DNA of 64,000 bases from Mantamonas sphyraenae STR306 (GCA_026936335.1 JAPMXV010000032.1:186001-250000); one strand, 5' to 3'; shown: positions 19,179 to 30,910, counted from the stretch's first letter. Program-made: numbers and translations. The notes: generated by a model not told the origin, from the letters alone.

Positions 19179-22100
19179 TCACGCGATCGGACAGCAGTAC
19201 TGATGCGTCACGTTGTTCAGATCGCCCCAGCCGCTTCCGTGCTTGTGGAACGCTTGCATCGCATAGCCGTTGGGGCAGCTGTGCCATCCACGACGGCCCC
19301 AGTGTGTGCGATATGTTCGACAGTGGTGATGGGACAGCACTTGTGTGCAGCGCACAGCGTGGATGCAACTCAAACGGTTGCAGCGTACACGGTGGAATCC
19401 TGAAATGGCCCATCCGCGCGGACAGCCCTGCCACCCGCCTTTCCACATCTGGTGCCGGATGTTGATCCAATTCTCTCTTGGTGATGTCCTGTTGCTCCTG
19501 CAGCACTTGGCTGCATGCATGCAGTTCAACCCCTTGCAGCTGTGGGTGTACACCTTCTGAACACTGTACCCCCGAGGACACTGCGAAGATCCTGCACGTG
19601 CCATGCTGTGCCTCCAGCTCACTGTTTTGCACTTTGCCATTTGCGCCAGCATTGCTGCTCGTCGTTGTGCGAGGGCCCGGGCAACGGCGGCCATCCTGGC
19701 TCTGTGCGCGGCATGCTTTGCATCAGCGCGACTCTGCCTAGCCTGTCTACCCTTTTGGATTTGTGCCCGACGTGCGTTGTGCTCTTCTTGACGTTTGCGG
19801 GCCTCTTCTCGACGTTTGCGGTCATCTTCGCGTTTGCGCCGTTGTCTATCCTCGTGGGCCTTCCTTCGAGCAGCGGCGTTGCGGCGCTTCTCATCTTCCC
19901 TGGCCTTCCGTTCCTCCTCCTCTTTGCGTCGCTTCTCGTCCCTCTTGCGCCGTTCCTCTTCCTCTTTTGCGCGCTGCCTGGCAAGGCGCTTCTGCTCCGC
20001 GAGGTTGCGGTCACGCTCGTCGCGTTCAAGCTCCTTCTGAAACTTGAGTGCTTCCTTCTGCTTCTTTAGCCTTTCAAGTCGTCGAAGCTCTGCCAAATCT
20101 TGGAAATAGTGCCCCCGTGCCAATCTCGCTTTGCGTTTTCTTTCCGCAGCACGCTTTTCCTCCGCGAAATCCTTGGCTTCTTGCGCGTTTGCGTACTCAC
20201 AGCACGAGTAGTGGTCGATGCTACGCAGGTCCCCGATTCCAGCCCCCGTCTTGTGGAGACCTTGAATGGCCAGGCCTGGAGGGCATCTCCACGTGCCATG
20301 CACGCCCCACAGGGCACGCACGTTGATGCATCGCGTCTTGGACAGTCCTGCAGTGCACTTGACGTTCGTAATGCATGTCAGATGGTTGCACCCGCTTCGC
20401 TCCAAACCCGAAATGCCGTGACCACTGGGGCACTTGACCCAGCCGCCAGCGTGCAGAGCGTGATTCCACTGGAACCACTTGCTCGGCGGCAACTCCATCG
20501 CGTAGTTGGATTTTCCGCACCTAGCATCCTTGATGCAATTGAGCCCAGTGCATCCATACGTGGTCACACCACTAGCAATCGTCGACGTCGGGCACTCGGC
20601 CTTGCCAGCCTTGCTCATCTGGTGGTGCCAGTGGACGGTACTTGCCACTACCAGTGCCTTTGGATCTTCAGGCTTGTCTGTGTACTTGCAGCACTTGTAG
20701 TGGTCCACCATGCCCAGGTTGCCCGTGGACACGGGTCCTGCACGGTGGAAGGCTTGCAGACCCCATCCCACCGGACACCCGTGTTCGCCCTTCTTCTTCA
20801 GGTCCACACGCACAAGCTTGCACTCGTTCGACAGGCCGTACGTGCACCGTGCCTTCTGAATGCAATCCAACGTATGGCAATGGTAGCGCTGGAACCCAGA
20901 CACGCCGTAGCCCTTGGGACAGGTTGCCCATCCACCAGCACGCAGGTACTCCCACCACCACAACCACACCTGCTTCGGGTTCTGTTGCTTGCGGTTCTTC
21001 TCACACACAGCTCCCTTGATCGCCCGCAGGTTCGTGCCACCAGACGTTGTCAGAGACTTGACAATGTACCCGCTCTTGCACTTGGCTTGCGTACTGATCG
21101 TCTTGCCCATCGTGTTGCCCCAATCTGCCCTGCTTGTCGCAAATTTCGCCTCGGCTGCGAAATCCTTGGCTTCTTGCGCGTTTGCGTACTCACAGCACGA
21201 GTAGTGGTCGATGCTACGCAGGTCCCCGGTTCCAGCCCCCGTCTTGTGGAGACCTTGAATGGCCAGGCCTGGAGGGCATCTCCACGTGCCATGCACGCCC
21301 CACAGGGCACGCACGTTGATGCATCGCGTCTTGGACAGTCCTGCAGTGCACTTGACGTTCGTAATGCATGTCAGATGGTTGCACCCGCTTCGCTCCAAAC
21401 CCGAAATGCCGTGACCACTGGGGCACTTGACCCAGCCGCCAGCGTGCAGAGCGTGATTCCACTGGAACCACTTGCTCGGCGGCAACTCCATCGCGTAGTT
21501 GGATTTTCCGCACCTAGCATCCTTGATGCAATTGAGCCCAGTGCATCCATACGTGGTCACACCACTAGCAATCGTCGACGTCGGGCACTCGGCCTTGCCA
21601 GCCTTGCTCATCTGGTGGTGCCAGTGGACGGTACTTGCCACTACCAGTGCCTTTGGATCTTCAGGCTTGTCTGTGTACTTGCAGCACTTGTAGTGGTCCA
21701 CCATGCCCAGGTTGCCCGTGGACACGGGTCCTGCACGGTGGATGGCTTGCAGACCCCATCCCACCGGACACCCGTGTTCGCCCTTCTTCTTCAGGTCCAC
21801 ACGCACAAGCTTGCACTCGTTCGACAGGCCGTACGTGCACCGTGCCTTCTGAATGCAATCCAACGTATGGCAATGGTAGCGCTGGAACCCAGACACGCCG
21901 TAGCCCTTGGGACAGGTTGCCCATCCACCAGCACGCAGGTACTCCCACCACCACAACCACACCTGCTTCGGGGTCTGCTGCTTGCGGTTCTTCTCACACA
22001 CAGCTCCCTTGATATCCCGCAGGTTCGTGCCACCAGACGTCGTCAGAGACTGGACAATGTACCCGCTCTTGCACTTGGCTTGCGTACTGATCGTCTTGCC

Positions 22101-25100
22101 CATCGTGTTGCCCCAGTCTGCTGCGAACGAAAGGGTCGTGGGTTTCTCCACAGTTTCGGCAATGTACCTACAGCACTTCAATTTCGTGAGGTCACCCAGA
22201 TGACCATTCGCTCCGTCGTTGTGCCTGTAGAACCCGTTGAGACCGAACCCGGCCGGACAACTGTGCGTACCGCGCCTCCCCAAGCCGTGCTCAAGGCTGA
22301 CAACTTCACAATCGTCCTTGTACGTGTTCAGTGTGCACTTTAGCATCTCAATCCCGGTCAGCGAGTGGCTGTTGCCGCGCTGCAAGCCGGACACACTGTA
22401 GCCTGCTGGGCAGCTCTTCCATCCCTTGACGCTCATCTTGCTGTGGACTTCCACAAATGCGTCCAGGTCGTTCTTGATGTTGCGCGTGCAACAATTGGCC
22501 CGTTCCAGGTTGACCAAGGCGCCTCCTGTCGTCTCCAACGAGTGCACCGACGTTCCTGCGGGACAGGACGACATACCGGCGCGATCGAAAGAGCTGTACC
22601 AGTTGCCCACTTGGCACGACACGGCGCCCTCAGGCGGACCGACGTCACGGAGCTGGCAGCACTTGATGTGATCCACAGTGTCCAACTCTCCGTGGTGCGA
22701 GCGGTTGGTGCGATGCAGCGCCTGCAACCCGTAGCCAAATGGACACGAAACGCTGCGGCTTGTCTGGCCAATCTTCAACTTGATGACGATGCACTTGCCT
22801 GTGTCAAGTCCGTCTACACACTGCAGTCCCTCCAGACACATCACGCCGTGGCAGCCGCCTTGTTTGCGCAGAAAGCCTGCAATGCCGTACCCGACGCGAT
22901 GGCAGTGGTACCAGTGCTCATTGAATGATCCACGGAAAGTAATCTCCCTGCTGGCATGTGCGTGAGTGCAGCAATCAGCGCCGTTCAGAGATTCCAGGCG
23001 CGTGCCTCGGTTCTTCAACAGACCGGTGATGATGGCTCCACGCGGGCATCGCACGCTGGCTCCAGGACCCAGGTGCCACTTGTGTTCACTGCATCGCTTC
23101 AGCGACTTGACCGTGAGTTCGCGCTCAGCGTCGAGCCGCTGGGTGGGACTGTGCACCTTGAGCACACCGTCAACGGGCGCCTTGATGTTTTTCTCCTGCG
23201 CTTTCCTGACCACCTTTTGCAGCTCCGCCCAATACTCGTCCAAAATCACACGTGTCTTGATCAGAATTGATCTCACGAGGCCGAGCATTTGCTCTCGGCG
23301 AGCCTTGCTCACGTGCAGGTCCTTCAAACGGCGCAGATCAGCAATGGCCAAGCCACGATCTCGCAAGGCCTTGCGTGCTTCTTTGCGCAGGTTCCTCATC
23401 TCAGGCGTGTTGAACATGCCCAGCATTGCCTGTTTGATGTCATATTCGCCCTTTTTCTCTCCACGCACAGCTGTGATGGTCGTGCAAAGTTCCATCTGTT
23501 CGCGATCGTCGTTTTCTTTCATCAGCACTTCGGTCACCCACCTGCCTTTTTCCGCAGCCTTGACCTCTGCATCCTCGGCCTTCTTGGCGTTGGATTTCAT
23601 CCTGCCTTTCCTTTCTTCGATGAGCCGAGAGATGTCTCGGTGGTTTTTGTGTTGCTCAAGGTAGTCGCGATCTGCCTTCACCTTTGCAAACTCAGCGTCG
23701 TACTTATCCTCGTACTGCTTGATTTCATCTCTCAACACCTCCACCATTTTCGAGTAACCTTTCAATCGAGTTTCGGTGGCTTCGCGCATCTGCTCAAAAG
23801 TCGACACAGGCATCATCTTCAGGTCCAGGAGGCGCACTCCTTCAGCACTGCGCAGACTCCTGAGGCGATGGTTGCTCATCGAAACGTACCGACGGTGCAG
23901 AATGTCATCCTTCTTCTGTGTCAATGCGTGCTCCATCAGCTTGCGTGAAATAGCCAGGCGCAAGCGATTGTCGAAAAGCTCCTTGCGGAGCGCAAGGCGC
24001 TGCTTCTTCATGTGAGTCGACCCGATGGCCTCTGTGATCACAGGCTCGTCCTTTTCTGCATACGGGTTGTACTTGATGCCGTTATCCCGTGCAAGCTTCA
24101 TATTCAAGTCCACATCTCCAAAGTGTGAAAACGTGCGCTCCAGCGCGTTGTCGATCAGGGCTTCGTCCACCTCTGCGCCGGTGTCGCGCTCCACCAGCGT
24201 CCATCGGTAGTCCTCTTCACCATTGACACTCTCTCGGTATTCCTTGGCGTTCTTGAACGAATGGAACACAAAGAGATTGGTGTTGCGGAGCTCCTTTTTG
24301 GATTCTTCGGACAGCGGGTGTCGTCCAAACTCGTCTGCGTGTTGGCCACGAATCATGAAACCAGAAGCGTCTCCAACGTCAGAAAACGAGTGGACAGGAA
24401 GCATTGGCCACAGAGCAAGGTCCTCTACGAGCTCTTCGTCGTCTGCGTCAGCTTGGCGCATGTTCCGTTCCGCCAGTGCGGACATCGGTTCTGGGGATGC
24501 CCATCCAAGCACGTCGGACGAGTCCCGGATGGAAGGCAGCATGGCCAACATGTCTGTCGGGATTTGCTCCACTAGCGAGAGGCGTGACCTGGCCACGTCG
24601 CTGTTCTTGTCGAGAACGTCGTCTGCGTTTGCCTCAGCCTTGGCTGTCATGGCATTGATCTGGTCCTTGGAAGGTAGCTTCCAGTCAAACTCAGCCAGCT
24701 TCTTCTTGAATTCAGTGATCTGAATTTCTTGGTCAACCAAATCGATGCCGATGATCGAGATTTTGGCGCCGACCAAAGGCCGCAGGCCAGCGCTCAATGT
24801 CAGCGTGTTCTTTTCAGCCACACCTTTGTTGTGTGCTTTCTCCGCCTCAGTAGGTTCTTCCAGCTCATACTGATCATCGCTGACCGAGATGCAGGCTGCG
24901 GCACCTTGCGGCTGAAACTCGGCCACCGCAAAGATCTGCAGAGCAAACGAGGGGCCAGCAAGGGAGTACAAAAGTGCACTGATCTTCGGCGTGACGGTGA
25001 TCTCCAGTGAAATGGAAGCGCATGGTCGGAACCCATGAGGGCCATTTCTGTGCAAGCGGATCGACTTTTCAAACACGGGCTTCAGGGCCAGCTTGCCGTT

Positions 25101-27889
25101 TTCAAACAGCGCTTCAAGGCCCAGCTTTAGGCTAGCTTCAAGGGATGCTTCCACTTTGAATTGGAATCCTGCCTGCAAAGTGAAGGAAGCGCCCACATTC
25201 AGCTGCCCCATGATCACAATGACCACCGGGACTGGGCCGATCTGAAAGTTGAAGGTTACGATGGGTTTCTGCATCGCCTTTCTGTCCTTCTCCCAATTGA
25301 GGATACCAGTCACTTGCGCAAACAGGTCAATCTTGGTGGTGAGTTTGGCCCCAAGTGCAAACTTGATGCGCTTCGGCTTAAACTTGACGATCTTGATTGC
25401 CAGAGTGAATGTTGGCGATACCTCTGCCTTGGCCTCCAGGATGCGAAGAACGATATCAACGGTTACGGTGACATCCCCGCGTTTCGCCTTCTTGTTCTTC
25501 TTGTTCTTCTTCTTCTTTTTGCGATTGCGACGTCGCTTCCGCTTTTTCTCCTTCTTGGTCATCAACTTCTTCAACGCCTTCTTTGCCTTCTCCTTGTTGT
25601 CGATCAGTTTCTGCACCTTCTGTTTCGTGCTCTCTTCTTCCTTTTTTGTTGATTTGCTCTTGCTCTTGTTCAGGTCGTACTCCTTGATCTTGAAGCCCAC
25701 CCCTGGGAAAACCTCGTCGATGTTCAGCTCGGCCGTTCCACCGTTGAGCATGTCCCATGCAAACTTGGCCATTTGACCAATGACCTTTCCCACCTGCACC
25801 AACGCGGTGCCGATGCTTTGGGCCACCTGTGCGACCGCCGAAGCGACAGTAGTGGCCACCTGGATGGCCGTGGCCGCAATGTTCTTTGCCTTGGCAATCA
25901 TCTCGGTGGCAAACGTGGTCAGTTTGCTCATCAATTTGCTCGTGAGGGCAGCTGCTGCCTCCACCAGATTGTTCAGGGCCGACTTGAGTTCGTTGAGCTT
26001 GTTGCCAATCAGGTTCACGAGATTGTTGAAAGCCGATGTCAGGCGGTTCCACGCACCCTTCAACTCGTTGCTGAGAGAATCGAACGCGCTCCTGAAAGGT
26101 GCGATCAGCTTTTTGGTCCAGCCCCAAAAGTCTTCCACCTCCTCATCTGCATCGTCGGCGTCGTCGTCGGCGAGTGCGATGGCGTTCTCGTCGTCGGTGG
26201 GGAACTCATCCTTCAATTCGTCGTCCAGCCCAGCGTCGGCAAGCTCCTCAACCGAAGAGTCCACGTCCTCGCTCTCGGAAGTGAACCCAAACTCGGCGTC
26301 ATCGATGTCTGTGCCCGCTGCTTTGGCCTCCGCCAGACCATGGGCAACCAAACGTGCTGCCTCCACAACGTACTCGCGGTGCTTGTCAAAGTACTCGCGG
26401 GCAGCTCCGGAAAGCTTTTCGCCGTACTCCTGGCTCAGGGCTTGCAGTTGCGTCGAGGACGGGTCCTGGTCAGAGATGCGACGCACAGCCTCCGAGACCT
26501 TTTGCAAAGCTTCGTGTGCGGCTTCGTCGTGCTTGTTTGCTGTTGCAACAGCCGCATGATCCTTGACCATGTCGCGCAGGATTTGCACCTGCTCGTTGCG
26601 GCGAGCGGCCACACTGCGGTCCTGGACTTTGCCGGTTTCCACGTCCTTGATCAGGTCAGACACGTCGGTAACCTCCACGTGGACGGTTGCATCCTTGACT
26701 GCGTCTTCAAGGTCTGCGTTTTTCACACGCAGGTGGTACGGCAACGAGTCCTTGGTGCACTGCGGCAGTTGGCCAGGCGACCATGCTTTGGCTCCGCTCG
26801 GGCTGTTGATGGCCGTGATCTTGTACAGACCTGTGGCAATGCCAAACACGGAGCCGACCTTGATCGACTTGCTGTGGCGGTGCATAAACACGCAGGTGGC
26901 GGTGAAAACACCGTCGCGTGCATCTCCACCCTCTGGAACCAGGCCCTGCTTGGCAAGGTCTTGCATGTTCCCAGAGTGCTTCAGAAATGTGTACTCGTCC
27001 ACATCGCTGAGAAGGCCGTGAGCCTCGTGGAAGGGCAAATCGGCATCGTCCACCTCTTCCAGATCCTCAGCTGAAGACTGCTCCGAAGCCACATCGAACG
27101 TGTACTCCCCGTTTGCTGCTTGAGCACGGTGAAAGTTCTCGCTCATGTGCTTGGAGATCAGGGTCAACGCACCGGTGCGAGACAACGCGTTCAAGGGCTT
27201 GGCCACATGGCTCAGGTGCGAGTCCAACCCCGCTTCGATCTCGAAAAAGTCGGGGTGCGTTTTCACTTCCCCACGAAGAAAGGTCCGCACGAGCGATTTG
27301 CCACGCAGGGATGCGTTCAAAGGGTACTGCTTGTAGACACGGTGCGTCGCATCCGAGATGGATTCGTCGCTCAGCCCCAAGTCTTTCTTGTACAGCTCCA
27401 AGGAGAAAAGGTCGTCGTCCGAAATTTCGCTCTCGTTCAGCACTTGTCCCGCACCACCGTACACCGTTGTTCCTTTGTCGAATCGTTCATGCAGTTCCTC
27501 CTGGGAGAGCCCAGCATCTGTGTGCCGACGATGGGATGTGATTTTTCAAGTGTTATTGTTCATGTGTCAGTCGGAAAAGTTGAGCTTCAACGACGAGAGG
27601 GAAAAAAGAACGCGGACCGAACCCTCCAGAAAAGACTACGTGTCCCATAGCAAGAACTCACACCGAGAACCGGCTCCACGCTCGCCCAAAGTCGGGGAAA
27701 GTGCACGTGCCACATCTGTGGATGTAGGGTGGTCCCAGTTTTGCCCCAGAGTGAGTACAGACGCGCGGAAAGGATGAAAGAATGCATGAAGACCACCCAT
27801 CCTTCCAATCGGGACAACTCACCGGAGATGCAAGCAAACACAAGGACAATTGCCAAAAGTTTGGCCCATCCATGGCGTTGCATCACCAT
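19179..27889 (-). CDS. Giant secreted multidomain protein (~2819 aa) with seven Cys/Trp-rich three-repeat modules
   Basis: Exons 27889-27823, 27715-27662 and 27517-19179 (two phase-1 GTGAGT..CAG introns) add a signal peptide MVMQRHGWAKLLAIVLVFACISDVARA to the 2761-aa ORF. The C-terminal half carries repeats of W...G...CP.G....GL.R......L......CC. Confidence 0.88.
20164..22121. repeat. Near-perfect intragenic tandem duplication, period 993 bp (331 codons)
   Basis: 20164-21128 matches 21157-22121 with only scattered substitutions; identical short ORFs in the track are offset by exactly 993 (20221/21214, 20506/21499, 20668/21661). Confidence 0.95.
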
Positions 27890-28086
27890 CGGATGGGGAT
27901 TGACTGCTGATACTAACATCGATCGACTGTTCCAGCAGAATTGAAATGTTTCCATTCCCGCATGGCGAAAAAAACACCCCAAACTCGCCGAACCTGTCCC
28001 GAGCTCTTCACCCCACCCCTCCCACATACAGTAAACCCCAAACCTCGTTCCAGTGCCCGCAGCTCCCCATTGCAGTCCGATCCTGC

Positions 28087-30910
28087 TCATCGACGTTCGT
28101 CCCCTCGCATCCGCTGCATGGCCCTGTTCTGCGCCTTGATACGACGCTGCAACATATCAATGGTCATCTCCATCTGCTTCTTCGTCTCGTTGGTCAGTTT
28201 GCTGGCCTGAGCCTCACGCGAGCTGCTGCTTCCTCGCTTCACCTGGTCCTGCAGCTCCCGCACACGCCCTTCCAGCTCCCGTACGTGTGCCTCCGCCCGC
28301 TCCAGTTTCATCTGCAGCATTGTGTTTTCCCTTGCGTGCGAATCCATCACGCGCTCAGCCTGGTCCGTTTCGTTCAGCCTGCTCATCATCTCTGCCGCCA
28401 TGCTGTTCTTCTCACGCTCCATCGAGTCGTGCCTCTCCTCCATCGCATCCCTCTCTCGCTCCACGTCCCGCAGCTTGGCTTCCAGCCGCCCGATCTCCTG
28501 CCCCAGCCTGTCCCGCTCGTCCTCCAGCATTTCCTGCAGCTGCGTCACCTTTTCCTGTGCATCCATGCTCTGTTCCGTCACATGGCTCAGCTCCAGCGTC
28601 TTGTTGTCTACTGCCAGTTCCGCAACCCCAAGCTTCTCCCTCAGGCCGTTCAGCTCGCTTTGCAGCTCTGCTTCGCGCACCTTCCAACGGCTGCGCTCCT
28701 GTTGCAGCTCCTGAACCATGCGGTCGTTGCTCGTCATCTCGCCGTGCAGACTTTCGGCACGGCTGTGCAGCTCTGCCAATTCGCTGTTGGCGCTCTCGTA
28801 CCTCTGCTTCCAGTTGGCTGCCTCGTTCTCGCTCAACTGCTGCGCGTTGCGTTCCTTGCGCAGCTCGCTCTGCAACCGGCCCACCTCTTGGATCTGTCGC
28901 TCCAATTCGCCTTTTGTCTTGCGCAGCTCCACCTCTGCCTGGTTGTTGCCCTCGTTCAGCTGCTCGTTGCGTCGCTTCAACCGCCCGTTTTCTTCTTGAA
29001 GCTGCATCAGTTCGCCTCGCATCGAGTCACTCTTCTTTTGCTCCTCCTTCACTCGACCCAAGGCCTTTTGTTTCTCCTCCTCCTCCGTGCTCTTGGCCAA
29101 CTCCGCCTTGCTCAGGTCCAGCTGCATCTGCGCCTGAGTGTCCTGCTGCAATTGCAGATCTCGCCTGGCCGCACGCAGCTCCGCTTGCGTCTCTTTGTGT
29201 TCCTCCTGAAGCCGTGTGTAGTGTTTAAACACATCCTCGTGCTGAAACTCCAAGTTGGCCTTTTCCGTGCGCATGAGGTCGAGCGCCGTCTTCTGCACGC
29301 CGTACTCGTTGTGCATGCGCTGAAACTCGCCCGTGAGCCTGTCCACCTCCTGCTGCAGCTCCTCCTTGCGTGCGTTTGCACGCTCCAGCTTCGTCTGCAG
29401 CGAGTTGACCTCCTCCTGCAGCCTGAAGATGTCGACGTCCTTCTGCTTCGCCGACCCGCTGGCCTTTTCCGCCTCTGTCTTGAGATGCATGGAGGTGACG
29501 TTTTGACGATGGACCTCGTCCAGCAGCGACTGCTGGTACTGCAACAGTGCCGACTTTTCCTCGTCCAGCTTGTTGCGTGTCAGCTGTGCCTCCTGGTGCT
29601 CGCTGGACACCTCCTGCAATTGCACCTCCACACGCCGCAAACGCAGCCGCAGGTCGTCGTTTTCCTTGCGCAGTTGCTGATTGTTTGCTTCGGCCTTGCT
29701 CAGCTTGAGCTGCAGGCCGTCCACCGCCACCTGGTGCTTGCGACGGATTTCGTCCAAGCTCTTGCCCATCAGCTCACTCATGGCGCTCGAGTTGTTCTGC
29801 TGCTGGTTTTGTGCGCGTTGGTTCACCTGCTCCAGCCGCTGCCGCATCTCCGAGTTGTTGTCCCGGTACGAGAGCATCAAGCGCTCAAAGTCGTTGCGCT
29901 CCATCTGCGCCGTTTTCGCCTCTGTGCATGGGTCAGAGCCGGTGGAGTGTGTGAGCAGCCGCCGTGGGCAGGATGGAGATGTGTGTGGCGTGTGGGCAGC
30001 CGTATTTGCGGGGAGGTTGGCGGGTGGAGACAACCTGCGTGTTGCTGCAAAAAGGGCAAGGCAACGGTGTGGAGGGAAAAAACTCACCTCGGTCCACGCT
30101 GTACTTTTCCTTCTCCAGCGAGTTGTACTTGTTCAGCAGCTCCTGGTACTTGTCCTGGAACATCTTGACCTCACCCTTGAGGTATTGCATCTGCTGTTCG
30201 CTGCGCACCTTGTCCGACTTGAGGCTGACGGTCTCGCTTTGCAGCGTTTTCACCTCGCCCTGCAGGAGCGTGTTCTTGTGGCCCAGGGCGTTGGAATAGT
30301 CCTTCTGTGTGCGCTCGCCTGACGACGACGACCCACCACTGGAGGGCGAGTAGCCGCCTGTGGATGGAGACGAGGACGAGGAGGCTGAGGAGGTGTTGAG
30401 GGCGCTGGTGCTGTTGCTGCGCGTGTGGCCAAACGCGCTGCTTTGACGAGCTCCCAACCGAGCGCTCTGGCTGCCGCCCGAGACGCCTGCACTGCGGCTC
30501 GTGTCCACCTGCAGCTGGCCCGTGCTACGCGACACGCCCTGGTTGCTGTAGAACGAGCGCGTGGCCCCGGGCGAGCCGGTGAGGGTGCGAAACGTGGACA
30601 GGCTCGAGGTGCGCGGCGACGAGGTCGAGGCCGGCGACATCGGTGAGCCCGAACGGCCGTATGCAGATGCAGACAAACTCGACGACGTGGTCGACGTCGA
30701 TCCAGCAGAACTTGGGCGGCTGCCGCCGGTGCTGCTGAAGCTGTTGCGGAACTGGTCCAGCTTCGGAGGCGGAGGCGAGCGACGAAGCGAGCTGGAGGGT
30801 GAGCTGCTACCGCCTGTGCTGCTTCGCACCGACGAAAAGCGCGACGACGTGGTGGAAGCACCAAAGCGCGGGCTGTTGGACGAAGCCATGGGCGAGTGAG
30901 GCGTGCTCAT
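28087..30910 (-). CDS. Long coiled-coil protein with a Ser-rich disordered N-terminus (possibly cytoskeletal/centriolar)
   Basis: Exons 30910-30088 and 29921-28087 join in frame; continuous E/Q/L/R heptad pattern; no family motif recognised. Confidence 0.8.

Follow-up and report, generated by a model that had tools for sequence, protein, structure and literature searches.

A family of giant, probably secreted modular proteins in mantamonads and a candidate prey-directed member in Mantamonas sphyraenae

Secreted proteins that join sugar-binding repeats to a beta-rich amphipathic module are known from the lectin-plus-pore-former chimeras, i.e. natterin/Dln1, CEL-III, LSL and biomphalysin. Among three-fold folds, VMO-I is built from three ~50-residue repeats, marked by Trp, Cys and Gly positions, which form a beta-prism of three four-stranded sheets, the beta-prism of Vip3 domain III and Cry domain II arranges three sheets around a pseudo-threefold axis, and the Cys/His-rich C-terminal domain of PCSK9, which has pseudo-threefold symmetry, comprises three six-stranded subdomains in about 230 residues. 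Here we describe a gene of Mantamonas sphyraenae STR306, which is located on the minus strand at positions 19,179 to 27,889 of a stretch of 64,000 nucleotides (GCA_026936335.1 JAPMXV010000032.1:186001-250000), called the window in the following and counted from its first letter. The gene is real, and our tentative conclusion is that its product of about 2,819 residues is a secreted, ligand-targeted protein, which binds membranes or surfaces and is used against bacterial prey, mantamonads being small marine gliding flagellates and voracious bacterivores (PMC10492846). That a secreted protein combines binding repeats with an amphipathic effector part is a familiar idea, while the architecture and both main folds of the protein are without described counterpart. 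Compared with the chimeras mentioned above, the Mantamonas protein is ten times larger, carries its modules in the C-terminal part, resembles jacalins only at Z ~2 and has no aerolysin/ETX-MTX2 match.

The bulk of the protein is encoded in one frame of 2,778 codons on the minus strand, which in the reading of the window is open from 27515 to the stop codon at 19179-19181; the open reading frame (ORF) track lists it as 19179..27464(-), and the same frame extends upstream to 27515 without a stop. Together with two small predicted exons further upstream, the chain amounts to 2,819 codons. The parts of the gene and of the encoded protein are as follows (residue numbers refer to exon 3).

27823..27889, minus strand: predicted exon 1, 67 nt, ending in phase 1; n- and h-regions of the signal peptide, 22 residues
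27716..27822, minus strand: predicted intron 1, GTGAGT...CAG, phase 1
27662..27715, minus strand: predicted exon 2, 54 nt, phase 1 to phase 1; c-region A-x-A (..DVARA) and a short linker
27518..27661, minus strand: predicted intron 2, GTGAGT...CAG, phase 1
19179..27517, minus strand: exon 3, 2,778 codons and the stop codon
26616..27515, minus strand: N-domain, aa 1-300, conserved in mantamonads, with many invariant His, Cys and Asp
26130..26615, minus strand: helical segment, then the acidic spacer, aa 301-462
25716..26129, minus strand: amphipathic helical tract, aa 463-600, starting with FWGW-KK right after the acidic run
25476..25673, minus strand: Lys/Arg-rich low-complexity insertion, approximately aa 615-680, a low-confidence helix in the model
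24666..25475, minus strand: long-stranded amphipathic beta-domain, aa 681-950, DUF7223-related
23103..24665, minus strand: middle region and coiled coil, aa 951-1471, blank in Pfam
22647..23102, minus strand: Cys-rich three-fold module 1
22161..22625, minus strand: module 2
21672..22139, minus strand: module 3 (duplicate copy B)
21183..21647, minus strand: module 4 (duplicate copy B)
20679..21146, minus strand: module 5 (duplicate copy A)
20190..20654, minus strand: module 6 (duplicate copy A)
20165..22118, minus strand: two tandem two-module cassettes of 993 bp, about 99% identical
19641..20168, minus strand: E/R/K-rich stalk, 177 aa, 52% E/R/K, single-alpha-helix-like by composition only
19182..19640, minus strand: module 7, the one that was modelled

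The first-pass annotation, which had been made from the sequence alone, proposed the two upstream exons, the chain of this length and its parts, namely the N-domain, the acidic spacer, the amphipathic tract, the Lys/Arg patch, the beta-rich domain, the coiled-coil region, six modules, the stalk and a seventh module. Indeed, all of these are present. The peptide of exon 1 has a basic n-region (R5, H6, K10) and an 11-residue core (LLAIVLVFACI, Kyte-Doolittle 3.4), and exon 2, read alone, opens with V-A-R-A, in which A-R-A constitutes a small-x-small c-region. Read exon by exon across the predicted splice, a basic n-region, a hydrophobic h-region and a small-x-small c-region are thus in place. 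An upstream exon is required, because an in-frame stop is located 14 codons upstream of the conserved exon-3 start with no ATG in between; the conserved protein sequence starts at the first codon past the second acceptor. Support for the splice junctions is comparative: the four runs that contain the stretch (one study, guessed to be DNA) gave unspliced contigs only, and the exons were searched one at a time. Within the window, GGTGAGT is not enriched.

The comparative support comes from paralogues in the same genome and from relatives in Mantamonas plastica. The exon-1 peptide can be aligned with the signal peptide of the M. plastica protein P0002 over residues 4-16 of the latter (9 of 13 identical, E 0.002 in a single comparison). 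Relative to the closest paralogue, C48, exons 1 and 2 show six differences, four of which are synonymous in the proposed frame and two conservative; exon 1 accounts for five of them (three synonymous) and exon 2 for a single, synonymous one, and the homology to C48 reaches only about 57 bp upstream beyond the ATG. In the C49 paralogue, which is 26% identical, the first exon starts with an ATG, is signal-like, measures exactly 67 nt and ends in phase 1 at GGTGAGT, and the main frame is preceded by a phase-1 acceptor. In the C15 paralogue the equivalent first exon measures 52 nt and ends in phase 1 as well. In the C43 and C44 paralogues, one open frame covers both a classical signal peptide and the conserved motif SQE.L..R[FW] of the N-terminus, and in C43 this frame runs on into the N-domain motif V.T..RG.V.TH.D. 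Finally, P0001, P0002, P0003 and P0005 of M. plastica begin with signal peptides. Entry into the secretory pathway by way of the signal-peptide exon, which the first-pass annotation had claimed, is likely in view of this exon, the conserved gene structure, the signal peptides of the relatives and the disulfide-rich modules, whose six invariant and further conserved cysteines one would expect only if the protein folds in the secretory pathway.

A motif CATT(T)CAAT precedes the start codon by 20-57 nt in the window (27930-27948) as well as in the C49 paralogue (L028:1292-1300), and the homology between the window and C48 begins exactly at this motif. It may represent an initiator or promoter element of the gene family.

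Searching the M. sphyraenae assembly (25,061,354 bases in 78 contigs, GC near 59%; a FALCON assembly, PMC10492846) revealed that the protein belongs to a multigene family. Collinear full-length paralogues are 80% (C48), 40% (C15) and 26% (C49) identical, the core of the beta-domain gave 18 matches at about 14-16 loci, since some ORFs hold two, and the N-domain gave 15 matches at most of those loci. The N-domain, the acidic run, the amphipathic helices and the beta-domain follow each other collinearly as the common core of the mantamonad family; members lacking the Cys-rich modules terminate in long amphipathic tails of highly basic character, and Pfam is blank for these members. Transcribed members are known from M. 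plastica (Trinity proteins P0001-P0005, EukProt EP00003), with E values of 1e-208 to 1e-22 against the family profile. These five proteins share the signal peptide, the N-domain, the acidic run, the aromatic-dibasic helix start, the basic patch, the beta-domain and a helical region, and P0002 ends in one Cys-rich module of the same type. They differ in length (1,044-2,610 aa), in their far more cationic helices and in their C-termini, which consist of one module or of unrelated small repeats, whereas the protein described here has seven modules and a stalk. The statement of the first-pass annotation that no described protein has this architecture therefore needs to be divided: no described full-length counterpart was found, but the protein is not an orphan, given at least 14 loci, the M. 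plastica relatives and a helix-plus-beta unit in diatoms and other protists. Two of the full-length paralogues, G000:C47:28335-34865 (2,177 codons) and G000:C49:374319-380855 (2,179 codons), are near-identical and located on different contigs; they may represent haplotigs or have arisen very recently by segmental duplication.

The locus is a constrained gene under purifying selection and not a chance ORF. In comparison with the 80% identical C48 paralogue, the ratio of nonsynonymous to synonymous divergence (dN/dS) is 0.03-0.8 per window of 100 codons and 0.03-0.42 over the first 1,471 codons. Synonymous divergence between 19182-27515 and C48 (L026:283-7599) is mosaic, with values of 0.04-0.26 at both ends (the first 400 codons and the modules) and of 0.5-1.25 in between, which suggests gene conversion between paralogues. 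In the DNA runs, contigs that are about 2-5% divergent from positions 26257-27807 and 22600-22990 occur at 4-40x the depth of exact-match contigs (e.g. 137 vs 31), suggesting more near-identical copies or alleles, which are collapsed or missing in the assembly.

We regard the N-terminal 1,470 residues as the conserved core of the mantamonad family and the C-terminal half as a variable targeting array. In the alignment of the paralogues, conservation of the N-domain extends from aa 1-300 onward to aa 400. No relatives of the N-domain outside Mantamonas were found in Pfam, the Atlas, a PDB sequence profile search and a scan with the family profile, and an hhalign comparison of the Mantamonas N-domain with the sequences that precede the beta-domain in outside relatives gave 41% probability over 23 columns, which is not usable. 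A word-indexed homologue search with aa 1-1480 returned nothing among proteins of 1,530-4,860 aa, and Pfam searches with the whole chain, single domains, the paralogues and four other family members gave sub-threshold noise only. The acidic spacer is pronounced (31 D/E in aa 401-500), and so is the Lys/Arg patch (39 K/R in aa 601-700). In the alignment, however, neither C48 nor C15, the 80% and the 40% identical paralogue, has the Lys/Arg patch, which marks it as an insertion private to this copy; the first-pass annotation was right about its presence. The stalk resembles the ER/K single alpha-helix stalks in its E/R/K composition only, and no membership is claimed.

An iterated local jackhmmer search seeded with module 7 identified exactly seven in-register modules of about 153 aa each, six of them contiguous and the seventh after the stalk. 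Applied to the paralogues, the same search gave six modules in C48, two in C15 and four in C49, with others on C64 and C42, so that the module number varies among paralogues (2, 4, 6 and 7). Modules 3 and 4 and modules 5 and 6 are a very recent in-frame duplication of one cassette. Each module contains six invariant cysteines and several further conserved ones. AlphaFold2 predicted module 7 with high confidence from an alignment of 21 sequences (predicted local distance difference test, pLDDT, 93.7; predicted template modelling score, pTM, 0.89) as three repeats, each of four strands and a short helix.

The sequence of the modules is without relatives in Pfam (E up to 10), in the PDB sequence profile search and in a word-indexed search among proteins of 84-268 aa, all of which were blank. 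In the structural comparisons, the top Foldseek match of module 7 was the Cys/His-rich domain of PCSK9 (E 1.6e-3, probability up to 0.96, template modelling (TM) score 0.4), followed at low probability by apicomplexan APC-beta, MABP and jacalin prisms. VIA-align ranked Vip3 domain III first (Z 5.0-5.4), then PCSK9 (Z 3.4) and jacalin-type lectins (Z 2.0-2.3 over 67-73 residues). The best neighbour, domain III of Vip3 (6tfj_B, Z 5.4, root-mean-square deviation (rmsd) 3.9 Å over 104 residues), shares the three sheets around a pseudo-threefold axis with the module, but the identity is 7-12%, the Z value is at background level, a disulfide framework is missing and the domain comprises about 170 instead of 153 residues. 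PCSK9 is likewise Cys/His-rich and pseudo-threefold, but its subdomains are larger than those of the module and the VIA-align Z is low.

The first-pass annotation had likened the modules to VMO-I-type beta-prism repeats, with which they indeed share three repeats of four strands each. However, the modules carry additional disulfides, and kinship to VMO-I was not supported by the searches: VOMI (PF03762) was not matched in Pfam by the whole chain (E up to 1) or by single modules (E up to 10), 1VMO was not found by the module profile against the PDB sequences, and no VMO-I chain appeared at Z ≥ 2 among 48,161 representatives or in the Foldseek top 1,000, searches in which weak pairs can go unreported. 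The small lobe of biomphalysin and aerolysin is a C-type-lectin-like APT domain and not a beta-prism, and the kinship to it that had also been proposed is not supported. Jacalin-like lectins gave no Pfam match either, and with a structural best of Z 2.0-2.3 membership in this family cannot be claimed. What stands of the beta-prism assignment is a confident three-fold arrangement of 3 x 4 strands whose only neighbours are of the beta-prism type, whereas the matches themselves are weak. Judged by the model, the module adopts a three-fold, prism-like arrangement, for which membership of VMO-I, jacalin or another lectin family could not be demonstrated.

Modules of the same type also occur outside the family core. 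A frame of 4,706 codons at G000:C68:343284-357401 (L030, L031) ends in two of them and lacks the core; near residue 520 it has a sub-threshold match to GLEYA, a PA14-like adhesin domain. On the shortest contig (G000:C64:13161-16060, L018), a copy of the module array is split over two overlapping frames of 636 and 447 codons, owing either to a frameshift or decay of this copy or to an error in the assembly.

The second main fold is that of the beta-domain. Based on an alignment of 49 sequences, AlphaFold2 predicted an up-and-down meander with pLDDT > 90 in the strands, which are 30-47 residues long and alternate strictly between hydrophobic and polar residues, so that one face is 67-95% and the other 11-22% hydrophobic. 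Foldseek found nothing for this domain (TM ≤ 0.13), and VIA-align returned outer-membrane and autotransporter barrels with Z up to 8.4, which is ordinary background. DUF7223 (PF23865) was not matched directly by the beta-domain of the window at E 10, but the two are linked via an intermediate, as the family profile matches P0036 (E 4.6e-8) and P0036 matches DUF7223 (E 7.7e-8). In addition, three of the 49 aligned members match DUF7223, the Atlas gave 0.89 to a fungal DUF7223 cluster, and the motifs IGPVPV and (L)Y..AGP as well as the long strands are common to the beta-domain and the DUF7223-type relatives.

Scanning 1.8 billion representatives with the family profile (HMMER) gave 244 matches, including four M. 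plastica proteins with E < 1e-60, many repetitive helical proteins that match the helical tract, and about 70 proteins that match the beta-domain only. The latter originate from metagenomes, a Phycisphaerae bacterium, Picozoa, Isochrysis and the diatom Stephanopyxis; several start with lipoprotein-type leaders, and in some the domain is joined to PKD, Big, BACON, CarboxypepD_reg or FGE-sulfatase domains. Together, DUF7223 and these relatives from bacteria, Ascomycota, Picozoa, a haptophyte and a diatom share features of the beta-domain with the Mantamonas protein, the bacterial members being small lipoproteins or domain fusions. NCBIfam gave no name for the beta-domain in the bacterial relatives, the gene neighbourhood of one of them consists of housekeeping genes and is uninformative, and DUF7223 was not mentioned in any paper found in the literature search. 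In P0125 and P0170 of Stephanopyxis turris, and in P0068 and P0104, a signal peptide, an N-terminal domain, an acidic run, a basic motif followed by FW/GW, an amphipathic helix and the beta-domain succeed each other; these diatom and marine-protist proteins end in a Cys-rich C-terminal part, and the order otherwise equals that of the Mantamonas core.

The amphipathic helical tract, which connects the acidic spacer with this domain, has a helical hydrophobic moment of 0.36-0.51 across aa 459-584. Its aromatic-plus-dibasic start (FWGW..KK) is kept in the paralogues and recurs as FWGRR in M. plastica and as RRNLKFW in the diatom. Matches to ApoLp-III were weak (Pfam E 1.5e-4, below the cutoff; PDB 1eq1, E 0.87), and apart from these the PDB sequence profile of the tract returned helical-bundle noise only; the likeness to Apolipophorin-III is one of composition, and we claim no membership. 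In M. plastica and in other family members, extremely cationic amphipathic stretches are located behind the acidic runs.

How these parts might act together can be outlined as follows. The module array would bind a repeated surface ligand multivalently, probably a carbohydrate on bacterial prey, and would thereby bring the amphipathic helix and the beta-sheet core onto the target envelope, where the core would then bind or disturb lipid; this would take place extracellularly or within the food vacuole. Until a protease cuts at the aromatic-dibasic boundary, the amphipathic part may be shielded by the acidic segment. Of these steps, the putative multivalent binding of a ligand or carbohydrate draws on analogy, and the putative engagement of lipid or membrane by the core as well as the masking by the acidic run and release by cleavage at the aromatic-dibasic site are proposals. 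Because the host is a bacterivore, an exported protein that disturbs the envelope of the prey is the most economical story.

Several observations weigh against this tentative assignment. The structural matches of the modules are weak (Z ≤ 5.4), and no lectin family was matched by sequence. The beta-domain has no confident known fold (TM ≤ 0.13; Z ≤ 8.4 corresponding to background), and its hydrophobic face may simply be a buried core, since the small bacterial homologues hold little beyond the beta-domain. Moreover, the helical tract in this copy is nearly neutral and not cationic, and the helix-plus-beta-domain unit is present in a diatom, which does not eat bacteria; the diatom relatives suggest that the function of the core is more general than prey capture.

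A more far-reaching proposal, which we consider rather doubtful, is that the helix-plus-long-stranded-beta unit represents a new and ancient class of protease-armed modules, whose members would insert into membranes or extract lipid. This class would comprise the present protein, at least 14 mantamonad loci, diatoms, a haptophyte, Picozoa, fungi (DUF7223) and many bacterial lipoproteins, and in Mantamonas its fusion with a new lectin fold, disulfide-rich and beta-prism-like, would have yielded giant bacteriolysins aimed at prey.

The use against prey has to be weighed first against a purely adhesive role, which comes close behind and is nearly as likely, that is, a possibility in its own right although not the probable answer. 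The protein would then be an adhesive or structural extracellular protein, such as an adhesin for the gliding substrate, a surface coat, mucilage or a prey-capture glue, which sticks without causing damage. The giant modular chain with its stiff E/R/K stalk and coiled coil, and the multivalent Cys-rich array are both in line with such a function, as are the PKD, Big, BACON and CarboxypepD_reg surface domains found beside the beta-domain in bacterial relatives, the existence of the diatom relative and the gliding of Mantamonas on surfaces. The chain has no anchor, however, as neither a C-terminal hydrophobic tail nor a conserved transmembrane helix was found in the mature protein, and the acidic runs followed by amphipathic, often highly cationic helices throughout the family look more like masked membrane-active segments.

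An oligomeric beta-pore-forming toxin of the natterin/Dln1, CEL-III or biomphalysin type, which is aimed by lectin modules and whose long hairpins turn into a barrel, is possible, though without specific support, and we consider it improbable. The four long strands (model residues 106-295) superpose on the pore-state hairpins of C8/C9, perforin-2, pneumolysin and gasdermins with Z 6.3-7.5 and on the outer-membrane barrels mentioned above, the strands are strictly amphipathic, and a lectin-like array is attached. However, these Z values are at background level, with an rmsd of 9-17 Å for the pore forms, and the hydrophobic face spans the whole strand of 40 residues and not a membrane-thick band. 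Aerolysin/ETX-MTX2 gave no Pfam match and no such chain was among the structural neighbours of the beta-domain, whereas for MACPF/CDC, gasdermin and leukocidin neither Pfam nor PDB sequence matches were obtained, so that the protein cannot be counted among the MACPF/CDC or gasdermin families.

There is similarly little to be said for a cargo or matrix protein of secretory granules or extrusomes, in which alternating acidic and basic segments would permit charge-neutralised dense packing and rapid expansion on release. Long acidic runs do adjoin basic stretches here and in the paralogues, and a multigene family of giant secreted proteins would suit such cargo, but the literature search found no extrusomes recorded for Mantamonas, and the basic patch is not kept even in the closest paralogue. 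Least probable is a wrong 5' gene model, by which the protein would not be secreted, or a decaying copy, since the one low-depth contig of run X4 that spans 27598-27897 without an intron gap has 12 differences and one indel, which fits a paralogue and not this locus, X4 is not recorded as RNA, and decay is at odds with the strong purifying selection, the intact frame of 2,778 codons and the comparative evidence for the signal exon.

For the use against prey that we tentatively prefer, the Mantamonas gene is a concrete and testable candidate for how small bacterivores seize and kill their prey. Mantamonas belongs to the CRuMs, a deep and almost unstudied branch of the eukaryotes, and even as an adhesin the protein would count as one of the first from the extracellular space to be described in this supergroup. 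If the beta-domain acts on membranes or binds lipid, this would provide a function for its relatives in bacteria, fungi and algae. Beyond its function, the locus brings together a confidently predicted new three-fold Cys-rich fold in seven copies and a widespread DUF7223-related beta-domain with an unusual, fully amphipathic sheet.

Just upstream of the gene, two ORFs overlap on opposite strands (27946-30168 on the plus strand and 28087-30087 on the minus strand). An exact look-up of seven neighbouring ORFs in the protein collection gave no match. The minus-strand ORF has a weak match to the BRE1 coiled coil, and the strand composition fits this ORF, so that 28087-30087 is probably a real gene and the plus-strand ORF its shadow. 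If so, about 200 bp separate this gene from the start of the gene for the giant protein.

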